This document shows positions 24,807 to 64,000 of a stretch of DNA of 64,000 bases, in pieces. The notes beneath the pieces were generated by a model. It ran no database searches and was not told the DNA's origin. It saw nothing but the letters and a program-made list of their open reading frames with translations. Both the position numbers and the translations under genes were made by a program. Source of the DNA: Cyanophora paradoxa CCMP329 (Eukaryota > Plantae > Glaucophyta); the NCBI GenBank assembly GCA_004431415.1, contig QPMI01000035.1:124001-188000 (forward strand). The letters run 5' to 3'. How positions within the stretch are numbered: position 1 is the stretch's first letter; every line of letters starts with the position of its first letter.

Positions 24807-25601
24807 ATGCCTATACCAAGTTCTGATTTGGATGAATTTGTGGCTGGTGAAATGATAGAACCCCCTTTCAGACTACTCATACTAGGTAAAAGTGGATGCG
24901 GAAAAACTGAAGCTGTAAAATATTATTTGAAACAGCTGCATGATGCCAAAAAGATTGATACAACACTTATTATATCGGCTTCCTCATTTTCACATTTTTG
25001 GGACAAAGCTGCTACTGTTCAACTGGGTGCATGGGATCCCCAATACATGTCGAAAATTATAAAAGAAAGAGAGGCAAAAAGGGAGAAAGGAGAAGAACTT
25101 AACCATATGCTGGTGATTTTAGAGGATATGATAGAAAATGACCAGCTGGATCTCAGTCGAGATAAAACAGTGGGAATGCTTTATATTCGTGGCAGACATG
25201 TCAATATATCAATTATTACTATTTCCCAAAAATTAAGAAAGGTCGCAAGTGTTATTCGCTGCAATAGTGATATAGTAATTATGGTTTGTGCAAGCAATCA
25301 AAAAGAGCTGGAAGCATTTGCAGAGGAGTTTTCGACTTTTCCTCGCAAAGAAGATTTCTATAAACTTTTTGAAGAGTATGTCCACTCATACCAATTCCTT
25401 GTTTATACATCTTTCAAGTATAATGTGGGCTACTATGTCGATAACGCCGATTTAGTAGGTGATTTCGATTTTCCTCGCTTCCACAGGAAGCCCAAAAAGA
25501 AAGAAGATGAACTGAAGCCACCAGAGAAAGAGGAAGCCCCCAAAGAAGTGAAAAGCCAACTTCATACTAATAAATTGATGCGATATAAGCGCGGTTTATA
25601 A
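24807..25601 (+). CDS. A32/FtsK-HerA family DNA packaging ATPase
   Basis: Walker A GKSGCGKT, Walker B LVILEDM, RGRHVNISIITISQ and IRCNSD motifs. Confidence 0.93.
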   Translation: MPIPSSDLDEFVAGEMIEPPFRLLILGKSGCGKTEAVKYYLKQLHDAKKIDTTLIISASSFSHFWDKAATVQLGAWDPQYMSKIIKEREAKREKGEELNHMLVILEDMIENDQLDLSRDKTVGMLYIRGRHVNISIITISQKLRKVASVIRCNSDIVIMVCASNQKELEAFAEEFSTFPRKEDFYKLFEEYVHSYQFLVYTSFKYNVGYYVDNADLVGDFDFPRFHRKPKKKEDELKPPEKEEAPKEVKSQLHTNKLMRYKRGL

Positions 25602-27414: not shown

Positions 27415-30400
27415 TTAATATTCAACATCCTCTCCATTGTCTTCTTGAACCCTTGTTATCTTTCGAAGTCCAATGTAGCCCCTTGCTCTTGTTCCCTGAA
27501 TTCGTTTAACCTCTGATTTCACATTGAAGATTTCCCTTACTCTCTTCATCACAGAAACACATTCAACTTTATCATCGACACTTCTGTATGATTTGTAAAT
27601 GGTATCACTCGAAACAAAGTCGTTTGCATTATGGGTGACTTCGAAATACTCCCTAAGCCATTCACCAATCTTGTCATTTTCAGCTGTAAAGTTTATTCCC
27701 TGTTCAATAATCGATTGAGGGGGATTTCTTAAGATCTCTTCAACCTCTTTGTTCTTCCACATATCCAGTAATATCTTCATGTGAGCCATCTTATACTCAT
27801 TATCATTGTGAAGAAGTGTGAACAGTGTTGGGTCAGCTTTCTTCTGACCAGCTTCAGGCTTCTCTCTGAATATATTATTGAATCTCTGGTATGAAAGCCT
27901 TCTTTGAATTGCAAAGTCTCGTTTATTTATAGTCAAATTGTCATTAGTTGTAATGTAAACCTGGAACATTGGAGTGAGGATTACTGGGTCTTTGAACACG
28001 GCTCTCACAGTCATTTCATTTCCACCTGTGGCCTCCTTAATTTTGGAAATTTGCAGTTTATCACCATCTTCAGCCTCATTACTGCAAGTCGCTTTCCAAG
28101 GAGTTTGGCAAGTTCAGGAGTAGCATCTGATGAGTTCTTTTTAGGTTTGGTCCAATAGGATATTTCGAGAGGGCTATAATAAGCCCCTGAAATCTGTTTG
28201 CAGTATTCCTGAACAAGTGATTTACCATTTGCACCAGCACCAGTCCACATGTAGAACTTCTGTGATTTTGTTGATCCACTGAGGGCAATGGCAATAGATG
28301 CCAGAAGGTAGTTTCGCTCTGCTGGATCATCTACAATCTCTCTATAAATCTGATTGAGATGGTCTACTTTCTTGTGGTCTACATTCTCAGTATAATCATA
28401 ACTCACACTCTTGCTCACCATATCTTCCAGTTTCCCCTTTCTGAAAGTCATAGTTGTCAGATCAAATACACCATTATCGAATCCAATTACATATGGAACT
28501 GTATCAATCTTTTCATAGAATTCATCATCATTCAGCAGAGGGAGCAGATCAGTCAGAAGGGATTTGCGATATCCTGATTGTTTAAGATTTTTGGCAATAG
28601 AAATTAATGTTTTCGATTTCTCTTCGAAAGCTGTTCTATTCTCTTCATCCTTCAAAGCTCTTTGGCTATAATGCACAGCCCTGCCAAGGTATTGAGGGAC
28701 AACAAGGCAACTTATGTCTAGGTAAATCTTTTGGTTTGTGTCATCATGCTCCCAAATCCCAGTATCAGTATTGAGTTTGAACCATGACTTTTTGGAGTAT
28801 CTCCAAGTATGTTGTAGTACTGTTGTAGTACCTCTTTGCACACAAGACTGACATCATAATGAGCGCCTCCAGAACCAGCGGACTTATCAATGAGATTGAA
28901 GATATCAGATTGCATTCCAATGAAGATAAATCGTTTTTTGCAATTGCCACTGTAGCTGGACACAATATACTTTTTATCTTCTCCTTTGGCTTTCATAACA
29001 TACCAGTTATTCGATTCATGGGACCCATTGCAGCATGGGCAATTAAGTCCCTTATTAGCAGCATCAAAGTTAAAGCCCAGTTCAGTTTGAGAGATTATAT
29101 TGGGATGCATAAAGCCCATATCCACCAGCTCTTTAAGAATACTCTTTTCCAATGCATCATGTGAGGTAGCATTAGCAGGATACTCACTCTTATAGATATA
29201 GTTCTCTACAATCCACTTTTTAAACTCATCAGTAGGCTCATTGAAATCACAGGTAAGTCGCTTTCCAAGGAGTTTGGCAAGTTCAGGAGTAGCATCTGAT
29301 GAGTTCTTTTTAGGTTTGGTCCAATAGGATATTTCGAGAGGGCTATAATAAGCCCCTGAAATCTGTTTGCAGTATTCCTGAACAAGTGATTTACCATTTG
29401 CACCAGCACCAGTCCACATGTAGAACTTCTGTGATTTTGTTGATCCAGTGAGGGCAATGGCAATAGATGCCAGAAGGTAGTTTCGCTCTGCTGGATCATC
29501 TACAATCTCTCTATAAATCTGATTGAGATGGTCTACTTTCTTGTGGTCTACATTCTCAGTATAATCATAACTCACACTCTTGCTCACCATATCTTCCAGT
29601 TTCCCCTTTCTGAAAGTCATAGTTGTCAGATCAAATACACCATTATCGAATCCAATTACATATGGAACTGTATCAATCTTTTCATAGAATTCATCATCAT
29701 TCAGCAGAGGGAGCAGATCAGTCAGAAGGGATTTGCGATATCCTGATTGTTTAAGATTTTTGGCAATAGAAATTAATGTTTTCGATTTCTCTTCGAAAGC
29801 TGTTCTATTCTCTTCATCCTTCAAAGCTCTTTGGCTATAATGCACAGCCCTGCCAAGGTATTGAGGGACAACAAGGCAACTTATGTCTAGGTAAATCTTT
29901 TGGTTTGTGTCATCATGCTCCCAAATCCCAGTATCAGTTTTGAGTTTGAACCATGACTTTTTGGAGTATCTCCAAGTATGTTGTAGTACTGTTGTAGTAC
30001 CTCTTTGCACACAAGACTGACATCATAATGAGCGCCTCCAGAACCAGCGGACTTATCAATGAGATTGAAGATATCAGATCGCATTCCAATGAAGATAAAT
30101 CGTTTTTTGCAATTGCCACTGTAGCTGGACACAATATACTTTTTATCTTCTCCTTTGGCTTTCATAACATACCAGTTATTCGATTCATGGGACCCATTGC
30201 AGCATGGGCAATTAAGTCCCTTATTAGCAGCATCAAAGTTAAAGCCCAGTTCAGTTTGAGAGATTATATTGGGATGCATAAAGCCCATATCCACCAGCTC
30301 TTTAAGAATACTCTTTTCCAATGCATCATGTGAGGTAGCATTAGCAGTATACTCACTCTTATAGATATAGTTCTCTACAATCCACTTTTTAAACTCATCA

Positions 30401-33400
30401 GTAGGCTCATTGAAATCACAGGTAAGTCGCTTTCCAAGGAGTTTGGCAAGTTCAGGAGTAGCATCTGATGAGTTCTTTTTAGGTTTGGTCCAATAGGATA
30501 TTTCGAGAGGGCTATAATAAGCCCCTGAAATCTGTTTGCAGTATTCCTGAACAAGTGATTTACCATTTGCACCAGCACCAGTCCACATGTAGAACTTCTG
30601 TGATTTTGTTGATCCACTGAGGGCAATGGCAATAGATGCCAGAAGGTAGTTTCGCTCTGCTGGATCATCTACAATCTCTCTATAAATCTGATTGAGATGG
30701 TCTACTTTCTTGTGGTCTACATTCTCAGTATAATCATAACCCACACTCTTGCTCACCATATCTTCCAGTTTCCCCTTTCTGAAAGTCATAGTTGTCAGAT
30801 CAAATACACCATTATCGAATCCAATTACATATGGAACTGTATCAATCTTTTCATAGAATTCATCATCATTCAGCAGAGGGAGCAGATCAGTCAGAAGGGA
30901 TTTGCGATATCCTGATTGTTTAAGATTTTTGGCAATAGAAATTAATGTTTTCGATTTCTCTTCGAAAGCTGTTCTATTCTCTTCATCCTTCAAAGCTCTT
31001 TGGCTATAATGCACAGCCCTGCCAAGGTATTGAGGGACAACAAGGCAACTTATGTCTAGGTAAATCTTTTGGTTTGTGTCATCATGCTCCCAAATCCCAG
31101 TATCAGTATTGAGTTTGAACCATGACTTTTTGGAGTATCTCCAAGTATGTTGTAGTACTGTTGTAGTACCTCTTTGCACACAAGACTGACATCATAATGA
31201 GCGCCTCCAGAACCAGCGGACTAATCAATGAGATTGAAGATATCAGATTGCATTCCAATGAAGATAAATCGTTTTTTGCAATTGCCACTGTAGCTGGACA
31301 CAATATACTTTTTATCTTCTCCTTTGGCTTTCATAACATACCAGTTATTCGATTCATGGGACCCATTGCAGCATGGGCAATTAAGTCCCTTATTAGCAGC
31401 ATCAAAGTTAAAGCCCAGTTCAGTTTGAGAGATTATATTGGGATGCATAAAGCCCATATCCACCAGCTCTTTAAGAATACTCTTTTCCAATGCATCATGT
31501 GAGGTAGCATTAGCAGTATACTCACTCTTATAGATATAGTTCTCTACAATCCACTTTTTAAACTCATCAGTAGGCTCATTGAAATCACAGGTAAGTCGCT
31601 TTCCAAGGAGTTTGGCAAGTTCAGGAGTAGCATCTGATGAGTTCTTTTTAGGTTTGGTCCAATAGGATATTTCGAGAGGGCTATAATAAGCCCCTGAAAT
31701 CTGTTTGCAGTATTCCTGAACAAGTGATTTACCATTTGCACCAGCACCAGTCCACATGTAGAACTTCTGTGATTTTGTTGATCCACTGAGGGCAATGGCA
31801 ATAGATGCCAGAAGGTAGTTTCGCTCTGCTGGATCATCTACAATCTCTCTATAAATCTGATTGAGATGGTCTACTTTCTTGTGGTCTACATTCTCAGTAT
31901 AATCATAACCCACACTCTTGCTCACCATATCTTCCAGTTTCCCCTTTCTGAAAGTCATAGTTGTCAGATCAAATACACCATTATCGAATCCAATTACATA
32001 TGGAACTGTATCAATCTTTTCATAGAATTCATCATCATTCAGCAGAGGGAGCAGATCAGTCAGAAGGGATTTGCGATATCCTGATTGTTTAAGATTTTTG
32101 GCAATAGAAATTAATGTTTTCGATTTCTCTTCGAAAGCTGTTCTATTCTCTTCATCCTTCAAAGCTCTTTGGCTATAATGCACAGCCCTGCCAAGGTATT
32201 GAGGGACAACAAGGCAACTTATGTCTAGGTAAATCTTTTGGTTTGTGTCATCATGCTCCCAAATCCCAGTATCAGTATTGAGTTTGAACCATGACTTTTT
32301 GGAGTATCTCCAAGTATGTTGTAGTACTGTTGTAGTACCTCTTTGCACACAAGACTGACATCATAATGAGCGCCTCCAGAACCAGCGGACTAATCAATGA
32401 GATTGAAGATATCAGATTGCATTCCAATGAAGATAAATCGTTTTTTGCAATTGCCACTGTAGCTGGACACAATATACTTTTATCTTCTCCTTTGGCTTTC
32501 ATAACATACCAGTTATTCGATTCATGGGACCCATTGCAGCATGGGCAATTAAGTCCCTTATTAGCAGCATCAAAGTTAAAGCCCAGTTCAGTTTGAGAGA
32601 TTATATTGGGATGCATAAAGCCCATATCCACCAGCTCTTTAAGAATACTCTTTTCCAATGCATCATGTGAGGTAGCATTAGCAGTATACTCACTCTTATA
32701 GATATAGTTCTCTACAATCCACTTTTTAAACTCATCAGTAGGCTCATTGAAATCACAGGTAAGTCGCTTTCCAAGGAGTTTGGCAAGTTCAGGAGTAGCA
32801 TCTGATGAGTTCTTTTTAGGTTTGGTCCAATAGGATATTTCGAGAGGGCTATAATAAGCCCCTGAAATCTGTTTGCAGTATTCCTGAACAAGTGATTTAC
32901 CATTTGCACCAGCACCAGTCCACATGTAGAACTTCTGTGATTTTGTTGATCCACTGAGGGCAATGGCAATAGATGCCAGAAGGTAGTTTCGCTCTGCTGG
33001 ATCATCTACAATCTCTCTATAAATCTGATTGAGATGGTCTACTTTCTTGTGGTCTACATTCTCAGTATAATCATAACCCACACTCTTGCTCACCATATCT
33101 TCCAGTTTCCCCTTTCTGAAAGTCATAGTTGTCAGATCAAATACACCATTATCGAATCCAATTACATATGGAACTGTATCAATCTTTTCATAGAATTCAT
33201 CATCATTCAGCAGAGGAGCAGATCAGTCAGAAGGGATTTGCGATATCCTGATTGTTTAAGATTTTTGGCAATAGAAATTAATGTTTTCGATTTCTCTTCG
33301 AAAGCTGTTCTATTCTCTTCATCCTTCAAAGCTCTTTGGCTATAATGCACAGCCCTGCCAAGGTATTGAGGGACAACAAGGCAACTTATGTCTAGGTAAA

Positions 33401-35250: not shown

Positions 35251-38200
35251 ATGCCCCGAATCAGCAACAGACTCATTAGAGAGAAGAAATGGGAACTCAT
35301 GGGATTACTTGGAACACTGTATGCAGCCCATGAAATCACAGAGGCTGAATATGACCGGGAAATCGGATTTATTTCAAGGGGCAGACCCACTTTAGCAAAA
35401 TCAACCAGAAAAGCCAATAACCTCTATGATAAAGTTGAAACTCTTGATGAACTGGATCGCCTGAGGCAAATAGAACCAGAGGCAGAAGATGGTACAGCAA
35501 TGAATGCATTATATCGCTGGCTCACATACAGAGCCAGAAGGGAAGTTGTTGTAGATGTGATTGAATATTTAGATAGAATTGCAACCTCTCTACCAAAACG
35601 TTTAAGAGACAGTCTAGATCAATTCAGGGCAATCAAAGTTCGCTTATCGTTTATCTGCAAGTTCGTAAAAGTCAGCAATCCACAGGTTTGGATATCGAAA
35701 TACATTTACAGCGATTATTTTGTATTAACCAAATCGAACAGAATGTGTCAGGAACAGATGAATGTGGTCGATAGCTATCGATTGGAGAGAATCGAAATGC
35801 TAAGAGTTGCTATTATGAGTTATGCCCCAACTGGTGCTGCTATGTTAAAACACCAGAATCAATTGCAGCCAAGGGAGCCACAGTGAATATTCGAAATATT
35901 GATGATTCTTGCTTTGAAAATGCCATTTTGGCATGGATCCATAGGAAAGATGTGAATTCCCACAAAAGAAGTGAGCTTACACAATATCGCAAATGGAAAT
36001 ACTCACCAACTACATACAATCCTTTGGCACTCAATTTCGATAACATCCCATTCCCTGTTCCCTGTGATGCTGAAATCATTGATAAATTCGAATCTCAAAA
36101 TGCAGGCATCAGCATAAACATATTTGGAATGGATCGAGATGTTATATATCCCCTACATCCATCCAGCAACCCAGGCAGAAAGCAAAAGATTAATCTCATG
36201 CTCATTCATGATGATGAAGGGAATGGTCACTATATAACAATCATGTCCCTTTCAAGACTTCTCAGAGTTGCCCTTGATAAAACCAAGGATCAAAAGTTAC
36301 ACTACTGTGATACATGCTTATCTCGATTCAGGTCTGAAGCTAAACTCACTGCTCATGTGGACTGAAACAGATGCTTTGATTGGAGACTCTCAAAGGGAAT
36401 CACACCAAAACCTGAGACCACCATAGAGTTTGGACTGAAAAACCTCAGGAAAACTGTTTCGCTTCCTGTTGTGGTCTACTGCAAGATTGAACATAGAAGC
36501 ATCCCCATTGATGCATCGAAATCCAAGAGAGAAGTCTCAGCAGTCAACCTGAGAGTAGTCACTGGGGCAGATGTTCAAGATTTTCGATTTGAGGGCAGGA
36601 TCCAATGGGAGGTCTGTTTGAATGCTTGGAATCCAAAGCAAGAGAACTGATCGATTTCCTGTTTACCAATATTCCCATGAATGAACTCACAGATGAGCAG
36701 AAAGCAATTTACAAGGCTACTAAACACTGTTACCTTTGCAGTGAAAGGTTCACCAAAGAGAACTTCAAATGCAGGGATCATGATCATCACACAGGTCAGT
36801 ACATTGCTCCTGCATGCAGAAACTGCAATCTACATAGGAGAATCTCAAAGCAAACCAAAGTTGCAGTGGTTGTTGACCAAATGGATGACTGTGGGACATT
36901 CATTTTCAGAAAAATAGCAGGCATGGGTGATAAAAAGCGAATCGAAATCCTTTCGAAAAACTTTGATCAATACCAATCATTGCAATGGGGTCTTTACAAG
37001 TTCATTGATGCAAGTAAATTCATGGATTTCGGAGCTGCTGATGTGACTGAGTTAATGAACAAATTCCAGGCTTTTAGAAGGCTTTCACACTCAGTATATG
37101 GACTTGACCCAGTTCATTATGTATCTGCACCTGAGTTATCTTGGGATGCTATGCTTAGGACCACCAAGGCAAAAATAGAGCTAATAATTGATGTAGAGCA
37201 ATACGAATTTGTTGAGAGGGGAATCAGGGGTGGCTTTGCAACAATGCCTTGTAGGTATGCTGAGGCTGATGGTGAGAACTCCCATATTATGCTGTTTGAT
37301 GCTAACAACTTGTATGGCTACTGTTTGAGTCAGCCAATTCCAGTTAGTGATTTAAGATGGGAGACCGAATTCAACCCACAAGATAACAGATCCAGTTTCC
37401 TAGAAGTTGATCTGGATTACCCAATTAGGCTGTTTCTAGATCACAGTGATTTCCGCCTTATTATTAACAAGAAAATAGTAGAATATGCAGAATTATCACA
37501 ATATCAAAAGAGCCTATTGGATCTCTCAGGAGAAGAGCTTGATAAAACCCCTTAGCTTACTGCAACTTTTGGTTCTGTGACCAACTATGTGATTTCTGAG
37601 CCTCTTCTACAGTATCTGTTGGACAAAGGTGTGAAATTAAAGAAAATTCACAGGGTCCTATCATTAACTGTGGCTCCTGTAATGAAACCCTAGATTGAGC
37701 TGAACACTGAGATGAGAAGGAAAGCAGTGAATAAATTCGAGGCTGATTTCTATAAACTGATGAATAATTCAATCTATGGGAAATGCATTGAATCATGTAG
37801 AGGTCGATCTGTGGTTAAGATTGCCAACACTGAGAAGCTATTTATGAAATATGCTGCCTCTCCTTTAGTGAAATCAACAAGTCCCTGCATAACTACAAGT
37901 TCTTCTATGATACTGTGAGGTCCCAATGGTCCAAAGCCAAGTTACTATTCCATGATACTGATTCCTTTTGTCTATATATTGAATCTAAGACCATTGCAAA
38001 AGATATAGAGAGTATTGCTGATTCTTTGGACCTTGGAGGTGATTCAAGAATGACCCCAGGTAAATACAAAAATGAAATGCCTGGCTCTGCAATACTGGAG
38101 TATGTAGGTCTGAGAGCAAAAGTTTACAGTTTCAGAACTGCTGAGATTGAGAGGAGTAAGCTCTCTGGGACTTCCACTGAGGAACTCCAATTCAATGATT

Positions 38201-38370: not shown

Positions 38371-39756
38371 ATGCCAGCAACTGGAAGAATAGTTAGGAGA
38401 ACCACTGAGCAACTACACGGTAACCTACTGCCCATCACAGTTCCAAAGGAGGAAAAGGGGGAATCTCGAATTGTAAAAAAGTCTGAAATGAAAGAGCTTG
38501 TCCCAGTAGAGATCCCAGTTGCTATTGCAGTGAAAGAAACCAGCAAGATTGCTAAGAGATTCTATGATGTGAGAACTGGTTACAAAGGGCTTCAAGCAAT
38601 GAGGGCTGAGTTACCAGATGAATCCTATAAGCAGTTGCAAGAGTTCTATAAAAAGCAAGAGGTAGTTCAGATCAATGCACCTGCTATATCTAGAAAGAGA
38701 GATCCCATGGTCCCAATAAGGCAACCCCTTGATACCTATGTGATTGATTTGCTCTTTTTCCCAGCTTATAAGAAACAAAACAATGGCTATGATACCTTTA
38801 TGACTGCAATGGAATCCACACTGAGAACTGGGTATATTATACCTATAAGGGATAAATCAGCTCTCACTACATTAGCTGCATTTAAACAGCTTGAGATGAG
38901 AGTGGCAAGACCCATAGTAAAAGTTCAATCAGATGCTGGGAGTGAATTCCAAAATCGAATATTCCAGGAGTATCTATCTAGTAAATACATAGAACACCAA
39001 GTGAGTGGAACTGCAGACCACAGAAGCCAAGGTCGAATTGAAGCCTTTAACAAGCAGATTAAGAGATTGATCACAAACTACTGCATAGCTAATAACACAG
39101 CTAGATTCTTTGATGTGTTGGGTGATATTGAGTTTAATTACAATAATACAGTTCACTCAGCTACTAAGATGAAGCCAGTTGAAACTACAGAGGAGCATTA
39201 TAGGTATATAGTGGGATTAGAAGATGAAAGATTCAAGAAATCAATAGCTTATCTTGATACCATGCAGCCTGGCATGTTTGTTAGAGTGAAAGTTGAGAAG
39301 AACCCCTTTGCTAAACAGGGTAACAATTGGTCTAGGATGGTTTACACTGTTGATAGTAGAGAAGGCTTTAAGTTTAAGCTAAAGAGTCCCACTGGTGAGA
39401 TCATAGATAACAGGTTTGCTTTCCATGAGCTTTTGCCTGTGAATGCAGTTGAGTATCTGGAAACCCCTACAGTGGATGCCTTAGAGCAAGCTAAAGAGGA
39501 AGCCAGGGTTGATGCTGCTATAAGGAGAGAAGGCATAGAAGCTGCTAATGAAGTCCCAGATAAGCCTTTGATAGAGGCTAGAAAGGAGAAGGCTGGCAAA
39601 GTTAACAGGGAACTCAAAAAGCTCACTATAGCAGGCACACAGAAACTTTCAGAAGTGAATAGCCAGAGATGGTATAATGACTTTCAGACTACTAAGGAGT
39701 CATATACAGCCCCTAAACCTCAAAGAACACTAAGAGAAAGGACCAAAACTAGCTAG
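38371..39756 (+). CDS. Retroviral-like (rve) DDE integrase, intact
   Basis: VIDLL, VQSDAGSEF, GRIEAFNKQIK (D,D,E), YNNTVHSATKMKP and a C-terminal GMFVRVK...NWSRMVYTV region. Confidence 0.93.
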   Translation: MPATGRIVRRTTEQLHGNLLPITVPKEEKGESRIVKKSEMKELVPVEIPVAIAVKETSKIAKRFYDVRTGYKGLQAMRAELPDESYKQLQEFYKKQEVVQINAPAISRKRDPMVPIRQPLDTYVIDLLFFPAYKKQNNGYDTFMTAMESTLRTGYIIPIRDKSALTTLAAFKQLEMRVARPIVKVQSDAGSEFQNRIFQEYLSSKYIEHQVSGTADHRSQGRIEAFNKQIKRLITNYCIANNTARFFDVLGDIEFNYNNTVHSATKMKPVETTEEHYRYIVGLEDERFKKSIAYLDTMQPGMFVRVKVEKNPFAKQGNNWSRMVYTVDSREGFKFKLKSPTGEIIDNRFAFHELLPVNAVEYLETPTVDALEQAKEEARVDAAIRREGIEAANEVPDKPLIEARKEKAGKVNRELKKLTIAGTQKLSEVNSQRWYNDFQTTKESYTAPKPQRTLRERTKTS

Positions 39757-45395: not shown

Positions 45396-45683
45396 TCACA
45401 CATAGTAAAATGCGGAGTTTTAACCAGAGGCAAGATCTAATTGAGATTCAGTTATATTATTCGGAAATATATACAGATTATCGATTAACTCAGTAAGACT
45501 AATCGGAAAATAAGAGAAATTTACGATAAAATATCGAAAAGAATACAAAATAATCGAAATAAATGAATATTCGATAAGATATACACAGATTATCGATTGA
45601 TTAAAATAGAATATACGAGATATATCAACAAAATCAAGTAAGATTAAGCCGAGGGTTAAAACTCCGCATTTTACTATGTGTGA
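45396..45683. repeat. 288-bp unit with perfect 30-bp terminal inverted repeats at the AT/GC boundary
   Basis: TCACACATAGTAAAATGCGGAGTTTTAACC (45396-45425) and its exact reverse complement (45654-45683). Confidence 0.9.
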
Positions 45684-46320
45684 CGGGGGGACGGGGGTCA
45701 GAGCGAAAGCGCTAGGAGGGGGAGGGGGAGAAGGGGGTGGAAGGGGGGTATGGGGTGGGGGGGGGTGGGAGGCAGAGAGAAAGATTGGGAGAGTTCAGGA
45801 GGAGTGGAGGGGGCGGAAGAGGAAAGAGGATGGGGCGAGGGTGGGGGGCAAGGCAGATAGAGCAAGGCATATGGGGGAGGAAAAGAAGACAAGAAAGAAG
45901 GGGAAGGGGGGAGGAAGAGAGGGACGAAGCGGGAGGGAGGGTACGAGGTACGACGTAGGTAGGAGGGACGAAGGGGGATGGGGTGTATGAGGTGAGGTGG
46001 GTGAGAGAGAGAGAGGGTGGGGCCAGGGGGGGGGGGGGAAGGGGGGGGGAGGGGGCGGGATGGCAGGAGTGGGGGCGGCGGTACGTGGAGAAGGGGGATG
46101 GCTTAAAGGGGGGGTTTGAGGTGGGTAGGGGGAAAGAGAGGGGCAGGAGGAATTCGAAGAGCGGCCAGAGGGGGATAGGAGGGGGCGGCAGGTGAGAGGG
46201 GTCAGGAAAAAAGACCACCTTGGCGAGAGAGGAGGGGGGAGGGGAGATGGGGAGGGGAAGGAGACATGGGCGCAAGGGGAAGGGGGTACGGGATGCAAGG
46301 GAGGGGGAGGGAAAGGAAGG
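45684..46320. repeat. G/A-rich low-complexity tract
   Basis: Strongly purine-skewed, with many G runs. Confidence 0.8.
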
Positions 46321-49032
46321 AGCGGCCGACCTCGCCGCTGGCGACCTCCTCGTCTCGGATGCCCCACCTGACCCCATCATGGCATCGCGATGTGCAGGAT
46401 CAAAACAGAAGCACAGAAAGGCCGAGCTCGAGCGGCGGGCGCGGACCGCAGGTCGCCGATGTGGAGGAAGAGGCCGCGCTCGGCGCAGAGGGCGCGCAGC
46501 CGCGGGTGCACCACCGCGCGGATCTCGTCGCGCTCCGCCATCATGTCCTCTGCGAGCGCGGGACGCGGGGCGCCAGCGTTATAATCATCCGCGCAGCGAG
46601 CCTCGGAGCGGGACGGGATCCGAGCAGGAAAGGCGCACGGAAGGTGGACGAAACGAAGACGCGGAGGGCGCGCCCGGCCGCGGGGGCGCCCGAGCGGGCT
46701 GCAGGGCCCGCGGCCGCGACCGGGCCCGGGGCGGCAGCGACGGACGCGGCTCCGACGCTGCCGAGCCGCACGGGCACTCCGTGGACGATCACGGGCGCTT
46801 CTGCAGCCGATGGTGCCGGCACCGGCGCCGCGGCCGCGGCCGCTCGACTCGGCGAGCTCCTTGACCGGTCGGCGGCGGACCCGAGCGTCCTTCCGCGGTT
46901 GTCTAGATCTGCTCTGTCTGCAGCTGCGGTGCTAGCTGCTCGGCTAGCTGCGGTGCTGGCACTATTAGTAGAACTGCAACTTCCCATTCGACGACCTTGA
47001 GAGCAGAGGATGCGACTGTGCGACACCAATGTGCTCAAGCGTCGCCGGCGCGCTCGCGTCGACGCTCCAGAAATGCACGCGGCTATTCGTGCACGTACCC
47101 CCTTGACCAACCACTAGTCTTTGTTACCAAGAAGGCACTTGAAGCTTTTAAGCCCTAGAGAGCCGTAGAAACGTGAAGGCGAGGTGCGCCCGCCCCCGGA
47201 CACGGCGCACCCGCGGCCGGCAGCAATTATGATCGCAGGCGCGACCCTCCGACAGCACCGCCGATGGCCGATCGCCGCATGTACATGTGCACGTCCGGGC
47301 ATGTACATGTTGCGCATGCGGCGCTGCAACCCGCACGCTCAGAGCGCGGGACCGCCCATCGCCGCGCCCATCGCCCACGATGGCCGCTCACCGCCTGCGC
47401 ACGTTCGTTATGCGGCGCAAATTCCGCTCGCCTCTAGCTCCGCGGCCGCGGCGTCGTCGCCGCTGAGCGCGAGCGCTGCCCCCGCTGGGCCGGGGCGCGG
47501 CGGCGGCAAAAGCGCAGCGGCGCTCGGCCTCGGAATCCCGCAGTTCCTCCTCCGCAGCCCGTGCCCGTGTCCGTACAGCCCCTCCCGCAGCCCGTGCGCG
47601 GTGCTCCGCGCCTGTCCTTCGCGCAGCCTCGCGGGCTGCGGTCCCCCGCCCCTGCGGGCGGCCCGGGCGGCGGGGCGCTTCTCGGGCCGGGGCGCGCGGG
47701 GCGGCCGGGGCGGCCCTCCGGAGCACCGGCCCCGCCGCCTGCGCGCGGCCCGCGGCCCGACTCCCGGCCGCGGAGTCCCTCGCCGCGGGGCGAGGAGTCG
47801 GGCCGCGGGCCCGACGCGCAGCTCCCCCCCGCGGCCCGCGCGCAGCTCGAGTCTCGTACCTCCTTCCGGGGTACCCTCCGCCGGCCGCCGCCTGTGGCCT
47901 CCCGCCCCTGCTCGCGGAGAAAGGTCCCCCCTCGCCCCCGCCCCTGCCAGGGGGCCCGCCCCGCCCTCCCCGGGGGCCCTGCCCGCAGAGGGCGGGGAGC
48001 CCGGCAAGGGCCCGGCCCGGCGGCGCTCCGGCCTCCTCGGCCCGGGCCCCTCGGGGCCCCCGCCCCGCCCCGGAGGCCCGCCTCCGCCCTTCCCGTACCC
48101 CCCCGCGGCCGCCCCCACAGAGGACGCCCCGGACGCCCGCCCCGAGGTGCTCTACCCCACCCTCTACGCAACTCTCTACCCCGCTCTATCCCCGCTGACG
48201 TCACGCGCGCCCGGTTGCAGCTCGCGCTCCCACGACTGGCGACGTTCGAGCTCGAGTCTCGTACCTCCTTCCCGGGGGTACCCTCCCGCGTGACGTCGCC
48301 CGGTCCGCCGTATCCCGTACCCCGCGCTGTGCTCCGTTTCCCTCCGACCCCGCCCGTCCCGCAGTCCCGCAGGGAACCGGGCAGCCTGCGTTCTCGCGGG
48401 GTAACGCTGAAGGCCTCCGCGGGCCGCCCGTCCGTGTCCGGCCTCGCCCTCGCCCCCGAAGTTCAGGTGAGAGCGTACCCCCCCTCTCTATCTCCTGCAC
48501 CCCGATGAGCTCCCCTCTCCCCTCCGGCTGCGCTCCCTCTCCCCCGTCCCATGCGCCGTCCGGTCCCGTACCCTGCCTCCCTGCCCCCCCCCCCCCCCGT
48601 TGTGACGTGATCCGAGAAGAGGGTACCCCCACAGGCGGCCGGACGGAAGGTGCCTTCTCCCTCTCGGCCCTCGAGCTCGCGCCGGCGGTTAGGCTCCAGC
48701 ACTCGTACCCCGGTCCCAGCCCGCGGCACCGGAGGGGCCCGCGGCTCACCTGAGCCGCCGGCCTGGGCCCCCTCTTCCTCCCGGCCCCCCGCGAGCCCTC
48801 CGAGGCCTCCGCCCCCTCCCGCTCCGCCGTACCCCTCCGTCCCGCTGTCCTCCACCTCCTGCCGCCTCCTTAGGATTCTCGAACAGCCAATATTGTACGT
48901 GTTCTGAACTACGTGCATTCGATTCGAATTCGATTCCAAGTCCGCGACTGGGGCTATATAGCTAGCTGCGTGCAGCGCCGGCGCCGGCTCAGCGGCTGGG
49001 GGTAGCGGCATGCAGCGCCGGCGCCCGCCCGC

Positions 49033-57349: not shown

Positions 57350-60300
57350 TCAAGAGGCTGGCAGAGCAGAAAGGGCGGCGGCCGTCTCCCGCGTCTTCGG
57401 GTGCGCCTCCCCGAGCCGCTCCCGCCGCACCGCCAGCGCCCGCTGCAGGGGGCACTCGCGATCGGCCCGCGGCGAGGCGCCCCGCGCCCCGCGCCGGCGC
57501 CGCGCACCTCGAAGTGGGCGCGGGCCTCGTGCGGGCGGCCGCGGGCGGCGGCGAGGGCGCCCATCGCGTGCAGCGTCTCCGCCGCGTCGGGGTGCTCGGG
57601 GCCCAGCGCCGCCTCTCGGACCGCCAGCGCCCCCTGCGCCGAATTCAGAGGGGATTTGGAGGGAGGAAAGAGGGACCAGGGCGCCTTGAGGAGGCGTTGG
57701 GCCTCGGCGTGCTCGCCCGCCCGCGCGAGCAGCTCCCCCAGTGACGTCGCGGAGGCTGCAGTGGCCTTGTGCTGCTCCCCGAGCTTCTCCCGCCGGATCC
57801 TCAGCGACCGCTGCGCTCATCTCAGTTAGCATCACTGATGATCAAAACGAAGAACGAACTGTGCACTATAGCACTAGCTATAGCACTGATATGCGCGTTG
57901 AGGAAGCACCTCAAAAAGCAGGCGTGCTGAGACGAGGTCCTCGTGTTTCATGTGCAGGCGCCCCATCGCATGGAGTGCTGTTGCTGTGTCGGGGTGCTCG
58001 GGGCCGATCGTCTTCTCCAAGATCGCGATGGACCGCTGCGCGAGAGGCCCAGCCCCGTCATGTTATAATTATTAGCCGCGCAGGCGCCACCAGCGCTCTC
58101 GTGATTGAGGAGGATCTGCTCCACGCACTTCGAGCATTGGCAGGGCCTTTTCATAATCACCCATCGCCTGGTGCAGTACCGCGAGCGCGTGGAGCGGCGC
58201 CGCCGTCCTGTGGTGCTCGGGGCCGAGCGCCTTCTCCGAGATCGCGAGGGACCGCTGCTCCGCAAACCCCGCCCCATTGCGTCATCAGCAGTCTCGTCGG
58301 GCCCTACGTCTCTCAAGCTCTTTCGCCAAAAGCAGAACCATTAATATTTCGACCGCGCACCTCGTACAGCGGTAGCGCCTTCGCGTACTCACCTGTATCT
58401 TGGAAAAGCCCTGCCAGCTGGTGGAGCGTCGCCGCTGTGCTGGGGTGCTCAGTGCCGAGCGCTTTCTCAGACATCTCAAGGGAAAGCTGCGCCGGAGGGC
58501 CGCCGCCCCGCCCTCAGTCAGCCATGCTGCCCCGACTCCGCCCGAACTCTCTTAAATTTAAAACTTGATTGAAGCCGTCAGCCATCTCTTCCCGACGCGG
58601 TCTATAGCTTCTTATATTTTGACAACTCTTAAAGTGAAGGATGCAGTGTGAACGTTTCTGCACCTCGTAAAGTGGCAGCGCCTCAACGTAATTGCCCATC
58701 GCCTGGTACAGCACTGCGAGTGTGTGGAGCGCCGCCGCCTTGCTGGGGTGCTCGGGTCCAAGCATTCTCTCGTACATCGCGAGGGACCGCTGCACCAGCC
58801 GCGAAAACCGCGCCCCATCCCGCCGTCAGCCGTCCCGCCCCGACCCCGCCCGCGCTCTCTCGATCGACTCTCTCTCTCTCGGCGAAACACATCCGCTGCG
58901 GCCCGCCGCGCACCTTGCAAAGTGGCAGAGCCTTTGCGTACTCACCCGTTGCTTGGTATAGCCCCGCGAGCTCGAAGAGCGTTGCAGCCGTGTCGAGGTG
59001 TTCTGAGTGGAGTGCCTTGTCCGAAATCGCAAGCGATAGCTGTAACAAAAGCCCCCGCCCCGTCACACAGTAAGCTATTACATATATATGCGCGCACCAA
59101 TCCCACCGCGTGTTCTTTAAATGAAATTAAAAATTGGCTCCGTTGCTAAAATGGCCCCGTTGCCGCATATCCGCTGCGGCCCGCCGCGCACCTCGTACAG
59201 CGGCAGAGCTTTCGCGTACTCGCCCACCGCCTGATATAGCTTTGCAAGTCTGTTGAGCATTGCGGCCGTGCTGGGATGCTCGAGACCTAGCGCCTTCTTC
59301 ACGGTGGCAAGGGCCCGCTGCAACAACCCCGGTCATCCTGACGTTAGCACCCTGCTGCTGCTCTGCCGTGGCCCTGCTGCAAATCCCAGAGCACCTCGCA
59401 CAGTGGAAGCGCCAGTGTGTACGCTCCCATTGCCTGGTGCAGCCCTGCAAGCATATAGAGCGATGTTGCCGTGTTGGGGTGCTCGGGGCCGAGTGCCTCC
59501 TCAGAGATTGCGAGGGACCGCTGCGCAGGAGGCCCCGGCAATTTCCTTGTCAGCCGCTCCACCTCAAACGCAAACCAGGCCCGCCCGTATTCTTTTATGT
59601 CTCTTACTATTTTATGACCAAATTCCCCAAATCAAGTCAGCCCGTGCCATTTTTAATTTGCTGATTGCAGATATCGATCCACCAGCTATAGCTATAAATC
59701 CTACTAGTGCTCCAGCCTACTGCGCACCTCGAACAGCGGCAGTGCTTTCTCGTACTGGCCCATCGACTGGAACAGCCCTGCAAGTTGGAGGAGTGCCGTC
59801 GCGGTGTTGGGATGCTTGAGTCCGAGCGTCTTTTCCGAGATTAACAGGGAGCGCTGCGCCGGAGGCCCCATGGTCATCGAATCTCGAGCTTGTTATCGAC
59901 TGCACCGCTACAATAATAATGCAGCTAGTGCTTATACTCTAGTGTTGATGAAGTTAAAGGGAATCGAGCGCAGACCTACTGCGCACCTCGTAGAGCGGCA
60001 GTGCCTTCTCGTACTGGCCCATCGCCTGGTACAGCCCTGCTAGCGAGCGGAGTGTCGCTGACATGTCGGGGTGCTCGGGTCCAAGCACTTTCTCGGAGAT
60101 TTCAAGGGAATGCTGCGCAGGAGACCCAGAGTCGTCCTTCCGTCAGCCGCCCTGCCTCGACCCTGCCCGAGCTACGGCTCTTGACACGGCGCACTTTGTG
60201 CATTGGCAGCGCCTTCTCGTACTTGCCCATCGTCTGGTACAGCACTGCAAGAGAGTGGAAGGTTGCCGCTGTTGCGGGATGCGTGAGGCCGAGCACTTTC

Positions 60301-63300
60301 TTAGAGATCTTGAGAGCTCTCTGCGCGGCCATCATTCAGTCAGCCAATCCTGCCACGTGCAGGCCAGCTTTTTAAAAATGAAAGCGGCTCAGGTTTGCGC
60401 ATTCCCGTACCTTGTACAGTGGCAGCGCCTTTGTGTACTCGCCTGTTTCCTGATACAGCTCTGCGAGCTCGCGGAGCATCGCCGGCATGTCGGGGTGCTC
60501 GGGGCCGCGCGCCTTCTCCTTGATCCTAGGGTGGTCAGAACTGCATGCATATTCCTCTTCGATTTTGCAGGCCCGCTGATCATGAGCCAGAGACCCAAAA
60601 ACATCCCGCCGTCAGCTGCTCACTCCGGCACCACCCGTGAGCTCTATACTGTTGCTCGTAATTACTGCGCACCTCGCACAGTGGTAATGCCTTCGTGTAC
60701 TCGCCCATCGCCCTGTACAGCCCTGCAAGCGTGTTGAGAGATGCTGCCGTATCCGGGTGCCAGGGACCGAGCGCTTTCTCAAGGATTGTGAGGGTCCGCT
60801 GCACATGAGACCCAAACCCAAATTTCATGATCAGTCAGCCGTTCTCGACGCTTTTCTGATAAAAGCAGATTTGCAATCGCTGCCGCCCACCGCGCACCTC
60901 GTACAGTGGAAGTGCCTTCGTGTAATCTCCCAACTTCTGGTGCAGCTTCGCGAGCGAGTGGAGCGCCGCCGCTGTGCGGGGGTGTTCGGGGCCGAGCGCC
61001 TTCTCGAAGATCGCAAGAGACCGCTGTGCCGGAGGCCCCGCCCGTCCCGCCGTCAGCCGCCCCACCCCGACCCCACCTACGTTCTCTCGATTGAAGTGCA
61101 TCCGCTGCAGCCCGTCGCGCACCTCGTTCAGCGGCAGCGCCTTCGCGTACTTGCCCATCGCCTGGTACAGCCCTGCGAGCTGGTGAAGCGCCATTGCTGC
61201 TCTGGGATGTTCGACTCCGAGCGCCTTCTCCTCAATCGTGAGGGATTGCTGCGCATGCGCCGGAGGCCCCACACCATCCCAGTCAGCCCACGCCCTGCTC
61301 ATGTTGATATCGATGCGTATGCTCGATTAATGGAAGTGACCTCTGAAAGTGGCAGCGCCTTTGCAAATGCACCCATCGCCTGGTATAGCGCCACTAACGA
61401 TCCACACATTGTCACTGTCTTGAGGTGCTCAGGACCGTACGCCTGCTCGAAAATCGCAAGGGCCCGCTGCGCAGGGTAAGAGCCCCCGCCCCCTTCGTCG
61501 GCCGCCCTGCCCCGCCCATTGCGGTCCATCTCGCACCTCATACAGAGTCAATGCCTTTCCGTACTTGCCGGTCACCTGGTAAAGCCCTGCGAGCGAGTGG
61601 AGCACCATCGCCGTGTCGGGGTGCTCGGGGCCAAGCGCCTTCGAATTCTCGGCAATCGTGAGGGACCGCTGCGCCAGAGGCCCCACCCCGTCCCGCCGTC
61701 ATGATCAGCCGTCCCGCCCCGACCCCGCCCGCGCTCTCTCGATCGAAACACATCCGCTGCGGCCCGCCGCGCACCTTGTACAGTGGCAGCGCCTTCGCGT
61801 AATCACCCATCGCCTGGTACAGCCACGCGAGCCCGTGCAGCGCCCCTGCCGTGTTGGGGTGCTCGGGGCCGTCGGCCCTCTCGTTGATCGCGACGGACCG
61901 CTGCAAGGACATCAAATCGAGCAGCTCCAAGGTAACAATAAGCGCTTCAGCACCTGCGAGAACGGGATTCCTTCTGCCGAGCGGCCCATTTTGTCAAGGA
62001 CTTGCGCGGCACGGCAAAGGTTGTATGCATCATCGGTGGTGCTCGCCGCGTCGAGGTGCAGGCGCTTCGCGTAGCATGCTGCTGCATCCTCCAATCGCCC
62101 GCTGCGGAGCCACAGCTCCACGAGCTCGAAGTCGTCGAGCCGCCTCAGCACGTCCGCGTCGCAGAGCAGGTTGGCGAGGGCGTCGCTGTGCCCGGGCCCC
62201 GCCCGCGCGAGCGCCCACGGCCCCTCCTCCGCGCGGCGCTGCGACGGCTCGCGAGCGCCAAAGAAATCCCCGAGCCGCGCGTGCGCGGCCTGCCGAGCTG
62301 CCCCGGCCTCCTCCAGCCCGAACTCGAGCTCGGCCGCCTGTTATATATACAATATTTATCAAATTGCAATTGTACGGGCCTCTCGACTTTAACAGTATTC
62401 TCACCTCCACGGCGCATCGATGGAAGAAGCCAAACACGCCATCTAATTATAATCAACGGAAGTGGAGAGTGAAGAAACACGTGGCTTTCAACAGAAAAGA
62501 AGTGGCTGCGTTTGTACCTCGATCCACGAGCATCGGAAGCATCCCGTACCACAACAGGCTCCATTGTACCTGTCACGGAAAACTGTCAGCGTCAGTGATC
62601 AAAATATTCTCTGCACACGATGTGCACCTCCGTCGGCCCGCCGGGCTCCCCGACCCGAAGTAGCGCCAGGAGCTCGCTCTCCGCCATCCCGTGGCGCGAG
62701 CAGACGATCGCACCCGCCACTGCTGCCACTGGGTTCTCCCCTTCTCCCTCGGCGTTGTACCTCTGCATCAGCCGGCGAAGGACGATGCATATTAGGTCCC
62801 GCGGCCCGCCGCAGGCCAGGCACGACTCGAGGACCGCGTCCAGAGTCGCGTGCACCGCCACCGCTGACAGCTCCTCCAGTAGCGTCCGCAGATACAGCCT
62901 GATCCAGAGTTGTCGGTCATGGATAAATCAAAACACGAAATGAGAAGAAAGCGACTCCTGGCGCACGCGTTCGCGCAGGCGGGCGAGTGGACTATCTTAT
63001 CGATGCGATCATCGCTCAGAGTACGCCCCTGCTCCTGCAGCACGCGCCACACGACTTCCCTCCGCTGTTCCGTTGTCAGCACCGCCAGCTCGCGCTCTCG
63101 TGTGCGAGGCAGCGCCCGTGTCGCGCTCAGGGCAGGACCTGACCCAGCAATCGACGTCAGCTCAGAACCGGCCGAGCTCAGCACATGTACAGATGCCCAC
63201 AGAAGCGCACCTGGAACACAGGACACGACGATGCGAAGCTCCGGGCCCGCAGCGGGCGGGAGCCAGGCGAGCGAGCGGGCGGCGGGGTCCCCTCGCAGCT

Positions 63301-64000
63301 GGTCGAGCGCGTCGAGCACGAGGACCACCCGCCCCGGCCACCGTGCCACCCCCGCGGCGAGCCACGCCTTCAGCCGGCCCGCCACCTCCGCATCACTCCC
63401 GTGCGACTCGACACCCTCCTCATTCGGCCACCGCTCCTTCACCTCCTCGCTGACCCGCCTGCGCGAGCGTGAGCAAAGGTTTGCAGATCCTGTACAGTCA
63501 CGACCCAGCGCAGCGACCGGGCGATGGAAGAGAGGAAGGAGCTGCTCTGCGAGCCGCCAATGAAGTGGGCGATTGTTAGGTCGCCCGGGTGCGCGCCACC
63601 CCACTGCGCCGACCAGTTTGCGAGCACGGCTGATGGCTGAATGAGAGAAGCCAACAATACTAGCGCACACACCAACGCGACGCACAGCTCTTCCCGCATC
63701 CGACCGCGCCGTGCAGCACGAAGATCTCATGCCCGCTTGCCGCAGCATAGGCATCGAGGGCGGCCGCGTCCTGCGGGTCGATGATGAAGGTCCGCCGTCG
63801 AGCTTCCGCAAACGAAGCCTGCGCTGCCCGCTCCTTTTGCAGCCACGTCTGCTGCTGGCCCAGCGGGTAGTCCCGCTCGATCATCTGCGCTCAAAGCGAG
63901 TCGGGCCAAGCGAGGCTCGGCAGTAAACAAAAGGTCAGACCGCGGCAAGGGCGTCGCGCATGGCGAGAGCTAGCTGCTCGGGGCCGTCGTAGTTCGAGAC
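57350..64000 (-). CDS. NACHT/AAA_16-type NTPase + TPR array (NPHP3-like, NLR-like); 5' end outside window
   Basis: Walker A VLHGAVGCGKS (~63700), HFIGGS, Walker B VVLVLDALDQL, LAWLP, LYLRTLLEEL, SRHGMAESEL, then 19 TPR exons and a terminal exon with stop at 57350. Confidence 0.9.
57508..61900 (-). repeat. Array of 19 single-TPR exons
   Basis: Exons 61900-61775, 61668-61537 (132 nt), 61466-61341, 61248-61123, 61023-60898, 60798-60673, 60540-60411 (130 nt), 60320-60195, 60112-59987, 59853-59728, 59520-59395, 59317-59192, 59039-58914, 58789-58664, 58486-58361, 58254-58129, 58035-57910, 57810-57685, 57633-57508. All are 126 nt unless noted, each CAG|...|GT (one GC). Confidence 0.92.

Follow-up and report, generated by a model that had tools for sequence, protein, structure and literature searches.

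Does a receptor gene in which every repeat sits on its own exon diversify within the cell by choosing among its cassettes, or does the exon arrangement only record how the gene was built? We examined this question for an NLR-like gene of the glaucophyte Cyanophora paradoxa CCMP329, which lies on the minus strand at the upper end of a 64,000-nt stretch of contig QPMI01000035.1 (the whole stretch is called the window here) and encodes a NACHT-type NTPase followed by an array of 42-residue tetratricopeptide repeats (TPRs). A sequence-only reading of this DNA had proposed a combinatorial system of receptor diversification. We consider it likely, with a probability of about 0.75, that the gene is instead a member of a lineage-expanded NLR-like family, that its array arose by germline duplication of exon plus intron, that it is spliced constitutively, and that its diversity lies between paralogues.

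Exon array, transcripts and gene product

The TPR array runs from position 61900 down to 57350 and consists of 19 full repeat exons and a terminal partial one (Table 1). Seventeen of the full exons are exactly 126 nt long, one is 132 nt and one is 165 nt, and all 19 are symmetric, with phase 0 at both ends. None of the 20 units contains a stop codon or a frameshift, and the splice sites are intact throughout: AG precedes every TPR exon, and the donor is GT in 18 of 19 cases, mostly as GTGCGC. The introns of the array span 51 to 207 nt. Each single exon tested matched Pfam TPR_12 with 32 to 43 bits (cut-off, 30.1), and a hidden Markov model (HMM) built from the exons found exactly 20 units (19 plus the partial one) across the six frames of the 64-kb window; the same search detected no spare, inactivated, intronic or antisense TPR cassettes. 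This one-repeat-per-exon pattern is far beyond chance. Because all repeat exons are symmetric, any cassette could be removed or duplicated in frame, as the sequence-only reading had claimed. Its 17 exons of 126 nt and one of 132 nt in phase 0, each holding one TPR, agree with the sequence, the Pfam matches and the RNA, namely, assembled contigs of four runs taken to be RNA, from two studies. Its exon of 130 nt, not in phase 0, has to be discarded: an acceptor (GATCAG before CGG) 35 nt upstream gives an in-frame exon of 165 nt, which is used in RNA and in the annotation, and contigs of all four RNA runs end or join at its borders, 60411 and 60575.

The four RNA runs carry 38 to 42% of the words of the locus, and their contigs align as spliced pieces. 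Two long contigs cover exon 18 through exon 7, and exactly 1008 nt (8 x 126) lie between their pieces at 58254 and 60411, so that exons 8 to 15 are all present; other contigs connect the linker exon, TPR exon 1 and TPR exon 2. The stretch should contain 25 constitutive introns, and the contigs gave 26 joints in total. All 15 of the 26 that are listed coincide with predicted borders and link adjacent exons, with no exon skipping among them; their ends are CT..AC as read on the plus strand, which makes GT..AG in the direction of the gene, except for one GC-AG intron. Splice-site strength is uniformly high (GTGCGC...CAG), and nothing points to signals that compete with or exclude one another. In the dominant mRNA, all cassettes are present in genomic order. 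The claim of combinatorial diversification is thus unsupported by the contigs of the four runs, and it also lacks spare cassettes in the introns or on the other strand of the window.

TPR exons 1 to 10, including those of 132 and 165 nt, match exactly a Cyanophora paradoxa protein in EukProt (tig00000145_g8838.t1, 1273 aa, hereafter P0153), exons 1 to 6 corresponding to aa 832-1085, and this identity establishes both the species and the gene, tig00000145_g8838.t1, and rules out a brown alga as the source of the window. The NTPase exons inside the window all match P0153 exactly as well. P0153 was retrieved by a second search, through a paralogue; phmmer with the Walker-B piece returned 146 matches, and the ten best looked up were all C. 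paradoxa NACHT-TPR proteins. The annotated protein ends by read-through into intron 10 (59521-59727; ...PLFE VRSRLEH), and TPR exons 11 to 19 are missing from the model, whereas spliced RNA contigs run on through them. By arithmetic (1266 + 9 x 42 + 30), the predicted full product has about 1674 aa, against 1273 annotated. The 5' part of the gene, about 320 codons, lies beyond the window edge at coordinate 64000.

On P0153, Pfam NACHT scored 31.4 bits (cut-off, 26.7) and NPHP3_hel 32.8 bits (cut-off, 27.9), and DUF4062 was found at aa ~60-225, outside the window, with E=8.3e-11 (Pfam on P0153:1-830). Single pieces of the window score below the Pfam threshold for NACHT; the Walker A exon is 52% identical to aa 283-347 of a paralogue, P0003, with a weak NPHP3_N match, and exon 62625-62897 alone gave weak matches to NPHP3_hel (E=9.9e-5) and HTH_NWD1 (E=0.019). 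By these domain matches, the protein is a nephrocystin-3-like, NLR-like STAND NTPase with the order DUF4062(NIR)-NACHT-NPHP3-type helical-TPR_12, and the NPHP3-like NACHT-TPR scaffold proposed earlier was right. It has been reported that DUF4062 ('NIR') is a TIR-like NADase, that it acts as the effector in bacterial Avs-type anti-phage proteins and human TEP1, and that it is N-terminal in many eukaryotic NLR-like proteins (bioRxiv 10.64898/2026.05.01.722283; 10.64898/2026.09.04.749371). An immune or NADase function of the Cyanophora gene is a reasonable suggestion from this homology.

At 57530-57615 and 58779-58975, several RNA contigs match only short stretches and then continue into unrelated sequence, with loose ends at 57540, 57556, 57584, 57613 and 58787, and the summed contig depth in these two regions is 2-3 times that of neighbouring exons. 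The loose-ended contigs probably stem from paralogue transcripts that have GC-rich TPR or intron-13-like sequence in common with the locus.

Variable positions, duplication and the paralogue family

An AlphaFold2 model of TPR exons 1 to 10 (P0153:832-1266) gave a continuous solenoid of paired helices with a predicted local distance difference test (pLDDT) score of 91.6. The closest folds were the TPR superhelices of KLC1/2, LGN and OGT, and KLC TPR structures were also matched by sequence (E down to 1.7e-23). Helix B is cut midway by the exon borders, and each exon junction unites the two most conserved half-helices (...KALPLYE followed by RSLAI.EK...), by which any two cassettes should be structurally compatible. 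In exon 7, the 13 inserted codons encode a stretch for which disorder is predicted (pLDDT < 50 at residues 266-276 of the model).

Across the 19 repeats, variability is highest at ten positions: 6, 16, 20, 22, 23, 26, 30, 33, 35 and 41. Of the variable sites named earlier, 16, 20, 22, 23 and 26 are in this set and 19 is only moderately variable, while 6, 30, 33, 35 and 41 vary equally and had not been listed. When the exon is aligned to consensus TPR structures, exon position 18 is TPR position 1, and exon sites 16, 19, 20, 22, 23 and 26 are TPR positions 33, 2, 3, 5, 6 and 9. In TPRs generally, residues differ most at TPR positions 2, 5, 9, 12, 13, 33 and 34, which line the concave face where ligands bind (Magliery & Regan, PMC1261162). 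Five of the top ten sites fall within that set plus TPR position 6 (hypergeometric p = 0.012), and the other five (exon positions 6, 20, 33, 35 and 41) do not. The entropy profile correlates with that of 88 repeats of Cyanophora paralogues (rho = 0.65) and with that of 45 repeats of non-Cyanophora, mostly bacterial, homologues (rho = 0.58), and both sets show the same groove enrichment. This indicates that the variability profile is generic to the TPR fold and is not a mark of this gene.

A codon test by parsimony counting on the exon tree gave an overall omega of 0.52, with the highest ratios of dN to global dS, 1.05 to 1.34, at sites 6, 16, 23 and 26. No site had significant dN>dS (lowest p = 0.13) in this test, which has little power with 19 short sequences and high dS. 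By pairwise Nei-Gojobori counting, pN/pS was 0.94 at groove sites, 0.80 at other variable sites and 0.29 in the scaffold, with a median dS between exons of 0.89. Groove sites thus show a nearly neutral rate of change, which is compatible with relaxed constraint or weak diversifying selection, and scaffold sites are under constraint.

The introns bear on the origin of the array. Homology extends along the entire length of introns 1, 4 and 13 (77-85% identity, E down to 1e-23), which implies that the duplicated unit was exon plus intron; introns 5 and 12 share their first 20-26 nt with these three, introns 8 and 14 share internal segments, and a CTRAY motif stands 19-40 nt before the 3' splice site in most introns. 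Exon-exon nucleotide identity averages 63% with a maximum of 78%, and neighbouring exons resemble each other no more than distant ones do, which argues for an old array. Exons 17 to 19 have only 42-64% nucleotide identity to the rest. About 20 Cyanophora paralogues with the order DUF4062-NACHT-TPR_12 were recovered, and five of them that are 78-87% identical in the NACHT region show TPR gaps of 42, 43, 84, 126 and 168 aa. These gaps of about 42-aa multiples point to gain and loss of whole cassettes in the germline, as judged from automatic gene models. The DUF4062-NACHT-TPR architecture is shared with many bacterial proteins, homologous at 31-38% identity over the NACHT region, and with proteins of Balamuthia, Nuclearia and Acanthaster. 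One repeat per exon is absent in the Balamuthia and Acanthaster genes checked, and among the genes checked the one-TPR-per-exon design is specific to this lineage. In 14 DNA runs, which may all come from the source strain, 99% of the words of the locus are found.

According to the explanation that we favor, a unit of ~200-330 bp (one 126-nt phase-0 exon plus intron) would have been tandemly duplicated in the germline by unequal crossing-over or replication slippage, and the intron at the same point of every repeat, mid helix B, would be the footprint of this process. Constitutive splicing would bring all TPR exons together in one long mRNA. Judged by its homologues, the TPR superhelix would sense the ligand and keep the protein autoinhibited, and ligand binding would lead to NACHT oligomerisation and activation of the N-terminal NIR domain, with NAD+ hydrolysis or signalling. 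Receptor diversity would then arise between paralogues over evolutionary time, through unit gain and loss and near-neutral groove change, and not within a cell by cassette choice.

Several observations weigh against parts of this explanation. Exon pairs flanking the homologous introns are not clearly more alike than the remaining pairs (65-75% nucleotide identity), so that the intron similarity may partly reflect splice-signal constraint (CTRAY). Some of the 42-aa indels may be annotation errors, because the paralogue models are automatic and the model of this very gene is wrong at intron 10. Assembled contigs drop rare isoforms and speak to the dominant mRNA rather than to low-level skipping, and 11 of the 26 joints and 113 contig pieces lie outside those listed. 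As to function, PADLOC gave no match for P0153:1-830 or P0003:1-800 at E <= 0.001 and NCBIfam none for the N-terminal 830 aa, and human NPHP3, NWD1 and NWD2 had no NADase activity in vitro (bioRxiv 10.64898/2026.05.01.722283; 10.64898/2026.09.04.749371).

Mapped features and viral neighbours

The positions of the exons and of the neighbouring features are collected in Table 1.

Table 1. Exons of the NACHT-TPR gene and neighbouring features, in window coordinates
Feature	Position	Strand	Details
End of linker exon after DUF4062/NIR domain	63941-64000	-	P0153 aa 320-339 exact
NACHT exon, Walker A (HGAVGCGKS)	63686-63884	-	P0153 aa 340-405 exact
NACHT exon (VLANWSAQW...IAHFIGGSQSSS)	63517-63629	-	Borders approximate, +/-2 nt; P0153 aa 407-443
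NACHT exon, Walker B (VVLVLDALDQL)	63209-63459	-	P0153 aa 444-526; lower border by RNA joint 63136/63209
NACHT C-terminal exon	62966-63136	-	171 nt; both borders by RNA joints; P0153 aa 527-583
NPHP3-type helical / winged-helix exon	62625-62897	-	RNA contig 62626-62897; P0153 aa 584-674
Two small exons	62566-62519, 62443-62405	-	75-nt intron; RNA joint 62442/62518; P0153 aa 675-703
Helical linker exon before TPR array	61954-62337	-	RNA pieces 61954-62336; P0153 aa 704-831 exact
TPR exon 1	61900-61775	-	126 nt
TPR exon 2	61668-61537	-	132 nt; two extra codons
TPR exon 3	61466-61341	-	126 nt
TPR exon 4	61248-61123	-	126 nt
TPR exon 5	61023-60898	-	126 nt
TPR exon 6	60798-60673	-	126 nt
TPR exon 7	60575-60411	-	165 nt; phase 0; 13-codon insertion; RNA borders and P0153 aa 1086-1140 exact
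TPR exon 8	60320-60195	-	126 nt
TPR exon 9	60112-59987	-	126 nt
TPR exon 10	59853-59728	-	126 nt
TPR exon 11	59520-59395	-	126 nt
TPR exon 12	59317-59192	-	126 nt
TPR exon 13	59039-58914	-	126 nt
TPR exon 14	58789-58664	-	126 nt
TPR exon 15	58486-58361	-	126 nt
TPR exon 16	58254-58129	-	126 nt
TPR exon 17	58035-57910	-	126 nt; exons 17-19 are the most diverged three
TPR exon 18	57810-57685	-	126 nt; GC donor
Intron 18 (TPR exons 18/19)	57634-57684	-	51 nt; GC-AG; joint in all four RNA runs
TPR exon 19	57633-57508	-	126 nt
Terminal exon	57442-57350	-	Partial TPR of 30 codons, then TGA; RNA joint 57442/57508; HMM match 57362-57442
Three 5' exons of second DUF4062-NACHT-TPR member (RALRVFVSSTFR / EDMMAERDEIRAVVHPRLRALCAERGLFLHIGDLR / VRWGIRDEEVASGEV)	46322-46693	-	Same strand as gene
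rve integrase	38371-39756		Low-G+C element
Endonuclease VII and protein-primed PolB fragment	36605-37555		Low-G+C element
D5_N primase-helicase open reading frames	28718-32348	-	Low-G+C element
Pox_A32-type packaging ATPase	24807-25601		Low-G+C element

A low-G+C (~39%) block at about 22000-45700, some 11 kb from the TPR gene, forms an integrated element, which by its gene content is considered polinton-like or virophage-like; the Pox_A32 ATPase has a single database relative, with 64% identity. The sequence-only description of a virus-invaded region was accordingly fair. The D5_N-type open reading frames (ORFs) of the element repeat with a 1169-nt period (28718-30010 and 29887-31179 both encode 430 aa), and chance tblastn matches recur at 29341, 30510 and 31679, a pattern suggestive of a tandem triplication within the viral primase gene. 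A second low-G+C block at 1723-5969 on the plus strand contains C1q-domain ORFs (3869-4927 and 4950-5969) together with a segment resembling phage-tail repeats (1723-3843); these may be fibre genes from another integrated virus.

Beside the first element stand 5' exons of a second family member, one of which is 91% identical to P0153 aa 57-91. On the gene strand, a pyrimidine-rich stretch comes after them, with the low-G+C viral element immediately behind it, and no NACHT or TPR exons follow them within the window. This member may be a paralogue whose truncation was caused by the viral insertion or lies at its site. Where the viral element meets the DUF4062 exons (45650-46300), strand asymmetry is extreme, with a GC skew of up to 0.8 and a purine-rich plus strand, and a similar pyrimidine-rich read-through occurs at the N terminus of P0153 (PPPPPLFRSPSFPFF...). 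Their resemblance suggests a conserved CT-rich intron in the family.

Alternative explanations and known systems

Combinatorial splicing of the TPR cassettes into Dscam-like isoforms is, in our view, quite improbable. Any subset of the 19 symmetric exons would stay in frame, rare isoforms are beyond the reach of contigs, and splice variants of repeat exons are reported for the ROCO genes of Ectocarpus and, by Teng et al. (2023) as cited in PMC11378527, for its NB-ARC-TPR genes. Nevertheless, the contigs of all four runs contain the exons in order, two contigs having eight full cassettes between exons 7 and 16, every listed joint lies between neighbours, the number of joints stands next to that of constitutive introns, and the uniformly strong splice sites show no competing signals. 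Somatic DNA recombination of cassettes from a reservoir, as in variable lymphocyte receptors, is a far more remote prospect: apart from the cassette architecture itself and a speculation made for brown algae in 2012 (PMC3341825), nothing speaks for it, whereas the window offers no spare, inactivated or antisense cassettes, 99% of the locus's words are unchanged in the 14 DNA runs (possibly the source strain), the introns measure just 51-207 nt, and later brown-alga work found no somatic recombinants (PMC11378527).

Cyanophora is a flagellate, and this counts for another possibility, namely, that the gene encodes a non-immune, ciliary or housekeeping scaffold of the nephrocystin-3 type, its exon structure being a neutral by-product and its variable residues an unconstrained surface. 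The full architecture equals that of NPHP3, with matches to Pfam NPHP3_N, NPHP3_hel and TPR_NPHP3, the groove pN/pS of ~0.94 is neutral rather than positive, and the variability pattern is generic. We still regard this as unlikely: DUF4062 has a defence role in bacteria, the 5' end of a second family member lies inside the same window, and the family, with some 20 or more divergent paralogues that differ in repeat number, has the look of a lineage-specific expansion and not of a single conserved ciliary orthologue. It is scarcely credible, finally, that the array is a decaying or pseudogenised one with non-functional distal repeats. The strong divergence of exons 17 to 19, the disordered insertion in exon 7 and the end of the public model at intron 10 would fit decay; against this, the 20 units are free of stops and frameshifts with intact splice sites, transcripts reach the terminal exon, and the scaffold is constrained (pN/pS 0.29). 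Germline duplication with constitutive splicing remains the explanation that we prefer.

The one-TPR-per-exon STAND design as such is already known, and the brown-algal precedent invoked by the sequence-only reading is real: 13 NB-ARC-TPR genes of Ectocarpus contain 124 TPR exons of 126 nt (42 aa), and exon shuffling, clustering, gene birth and death and limited positive selection have been described for them (Zambounis et al. 2012, PMC3341825). As in Ectocarpus, a STAND NTPase precedes the TPR array in the Cyanophora gene, each repeat of 42 aa having a 126-nt phase-0 exon to itself, and the gene belongs to a multigene family with variable repeat number, variable surface positions and a proposed role as pathogen sensor. 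Unlike the Ectocarpus genes, it has an NTPase of the NACHT/NPHP3 type with an N-terminal DUF4062/NIR domain instead of NB-ARC, and its host is a glaucophyte (Archaeplastida) and not a brown alga; inactivated intronic cassettes are absent from the window and splice variants from the contigs, and no site-wise positive selection was detected in the array by a test of low power. What is new is therefore the glaucophyte host and the NACHT/NIR scaffold. We found no paper describing such NACHT-TPR or NLR genes in Cyanophora in a literature search, and the 2019 C. paradoxa genome paper (PMC6704402) mentions neither TPR nor NACHT.

The brown-alga LRR-ROCO genes (PMC3341825, PMC11378527) likewise carry one repeat per symmetric exon, with exon-level duplication driving variation, although their 72-nt LRR exons, ROC-COR GTPase, intronic or antisense spare exons and splice variants were not seen here. 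The order DUF4062-NACHT-helical-repeat is shared with the nephrocystin-3/TTC41/NWD1-2/TEP1 group, whose Pfam families match the Cyanophora proteins; unlike that group, the Cyanophora family is expanded (~20 or more) and has one TPR per exon. By its sequence, the gene also resembles the bacterial Avs2-type NIR-STAND-TPR proteins in the three-part logic of an NADase-type effector, a STAND ATPase and a TPR sensor, whereas it is eukaryotic and intron-rich and matches no PADLOC model. Its repeats are of the 42-residue TPR_12/TPR_10 class found in fungal NLRs (42-residue TPR-like repeats, PDB 4Y6C/4Y6W) and kinesin light chain, with a superhelical fold and variable sites mainly in helix A, facing the groove. 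However, fungal NLR repeats are near-identical, lie on a single exon and are shuffled by recombination, while the Cyanophora repeats are old (median dS about 0.9, 63% mean nucleotide identity) and separated by introns.

More speculatively, and with the balance of probability against it, the convergence of glaucophyte and brown alga on this design might have been favoured because it makes repeat turnover safe for frame and fold, the gene serving as a sensor coupled to an NIR NADase effector against the polinton-like viruses and giant-virus relatives in which the Cyanophora genome abounds, with low-level cassette skipping, regulated by infection, as a further layer. If this is true, unequal crossing-over would add, delete or swap sensor repeats while frame and fold are kept, since the cuts would fall within the most conserved half-helices.

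For the interpretation of such genes in general, a symmetric-exon architecture with variable groove residues is by itself no evidence for combinatorial diversification. The public model of this gene is corrected, the annotated protein being short by about 400 residues, and the gene offers a specific candidate, from a eukaryotic alga whose genome carries many integrated viruses, for the NIR (DUF4062) NADase effector described recently. The exon-per-repeat design of NLR-like genes, known on NB-ARC in brown algae, is thereby extended to a glaucophyte and a NACHT/NIR scaffold, and whether this design has originated recurrently or is ancient becomes testable.

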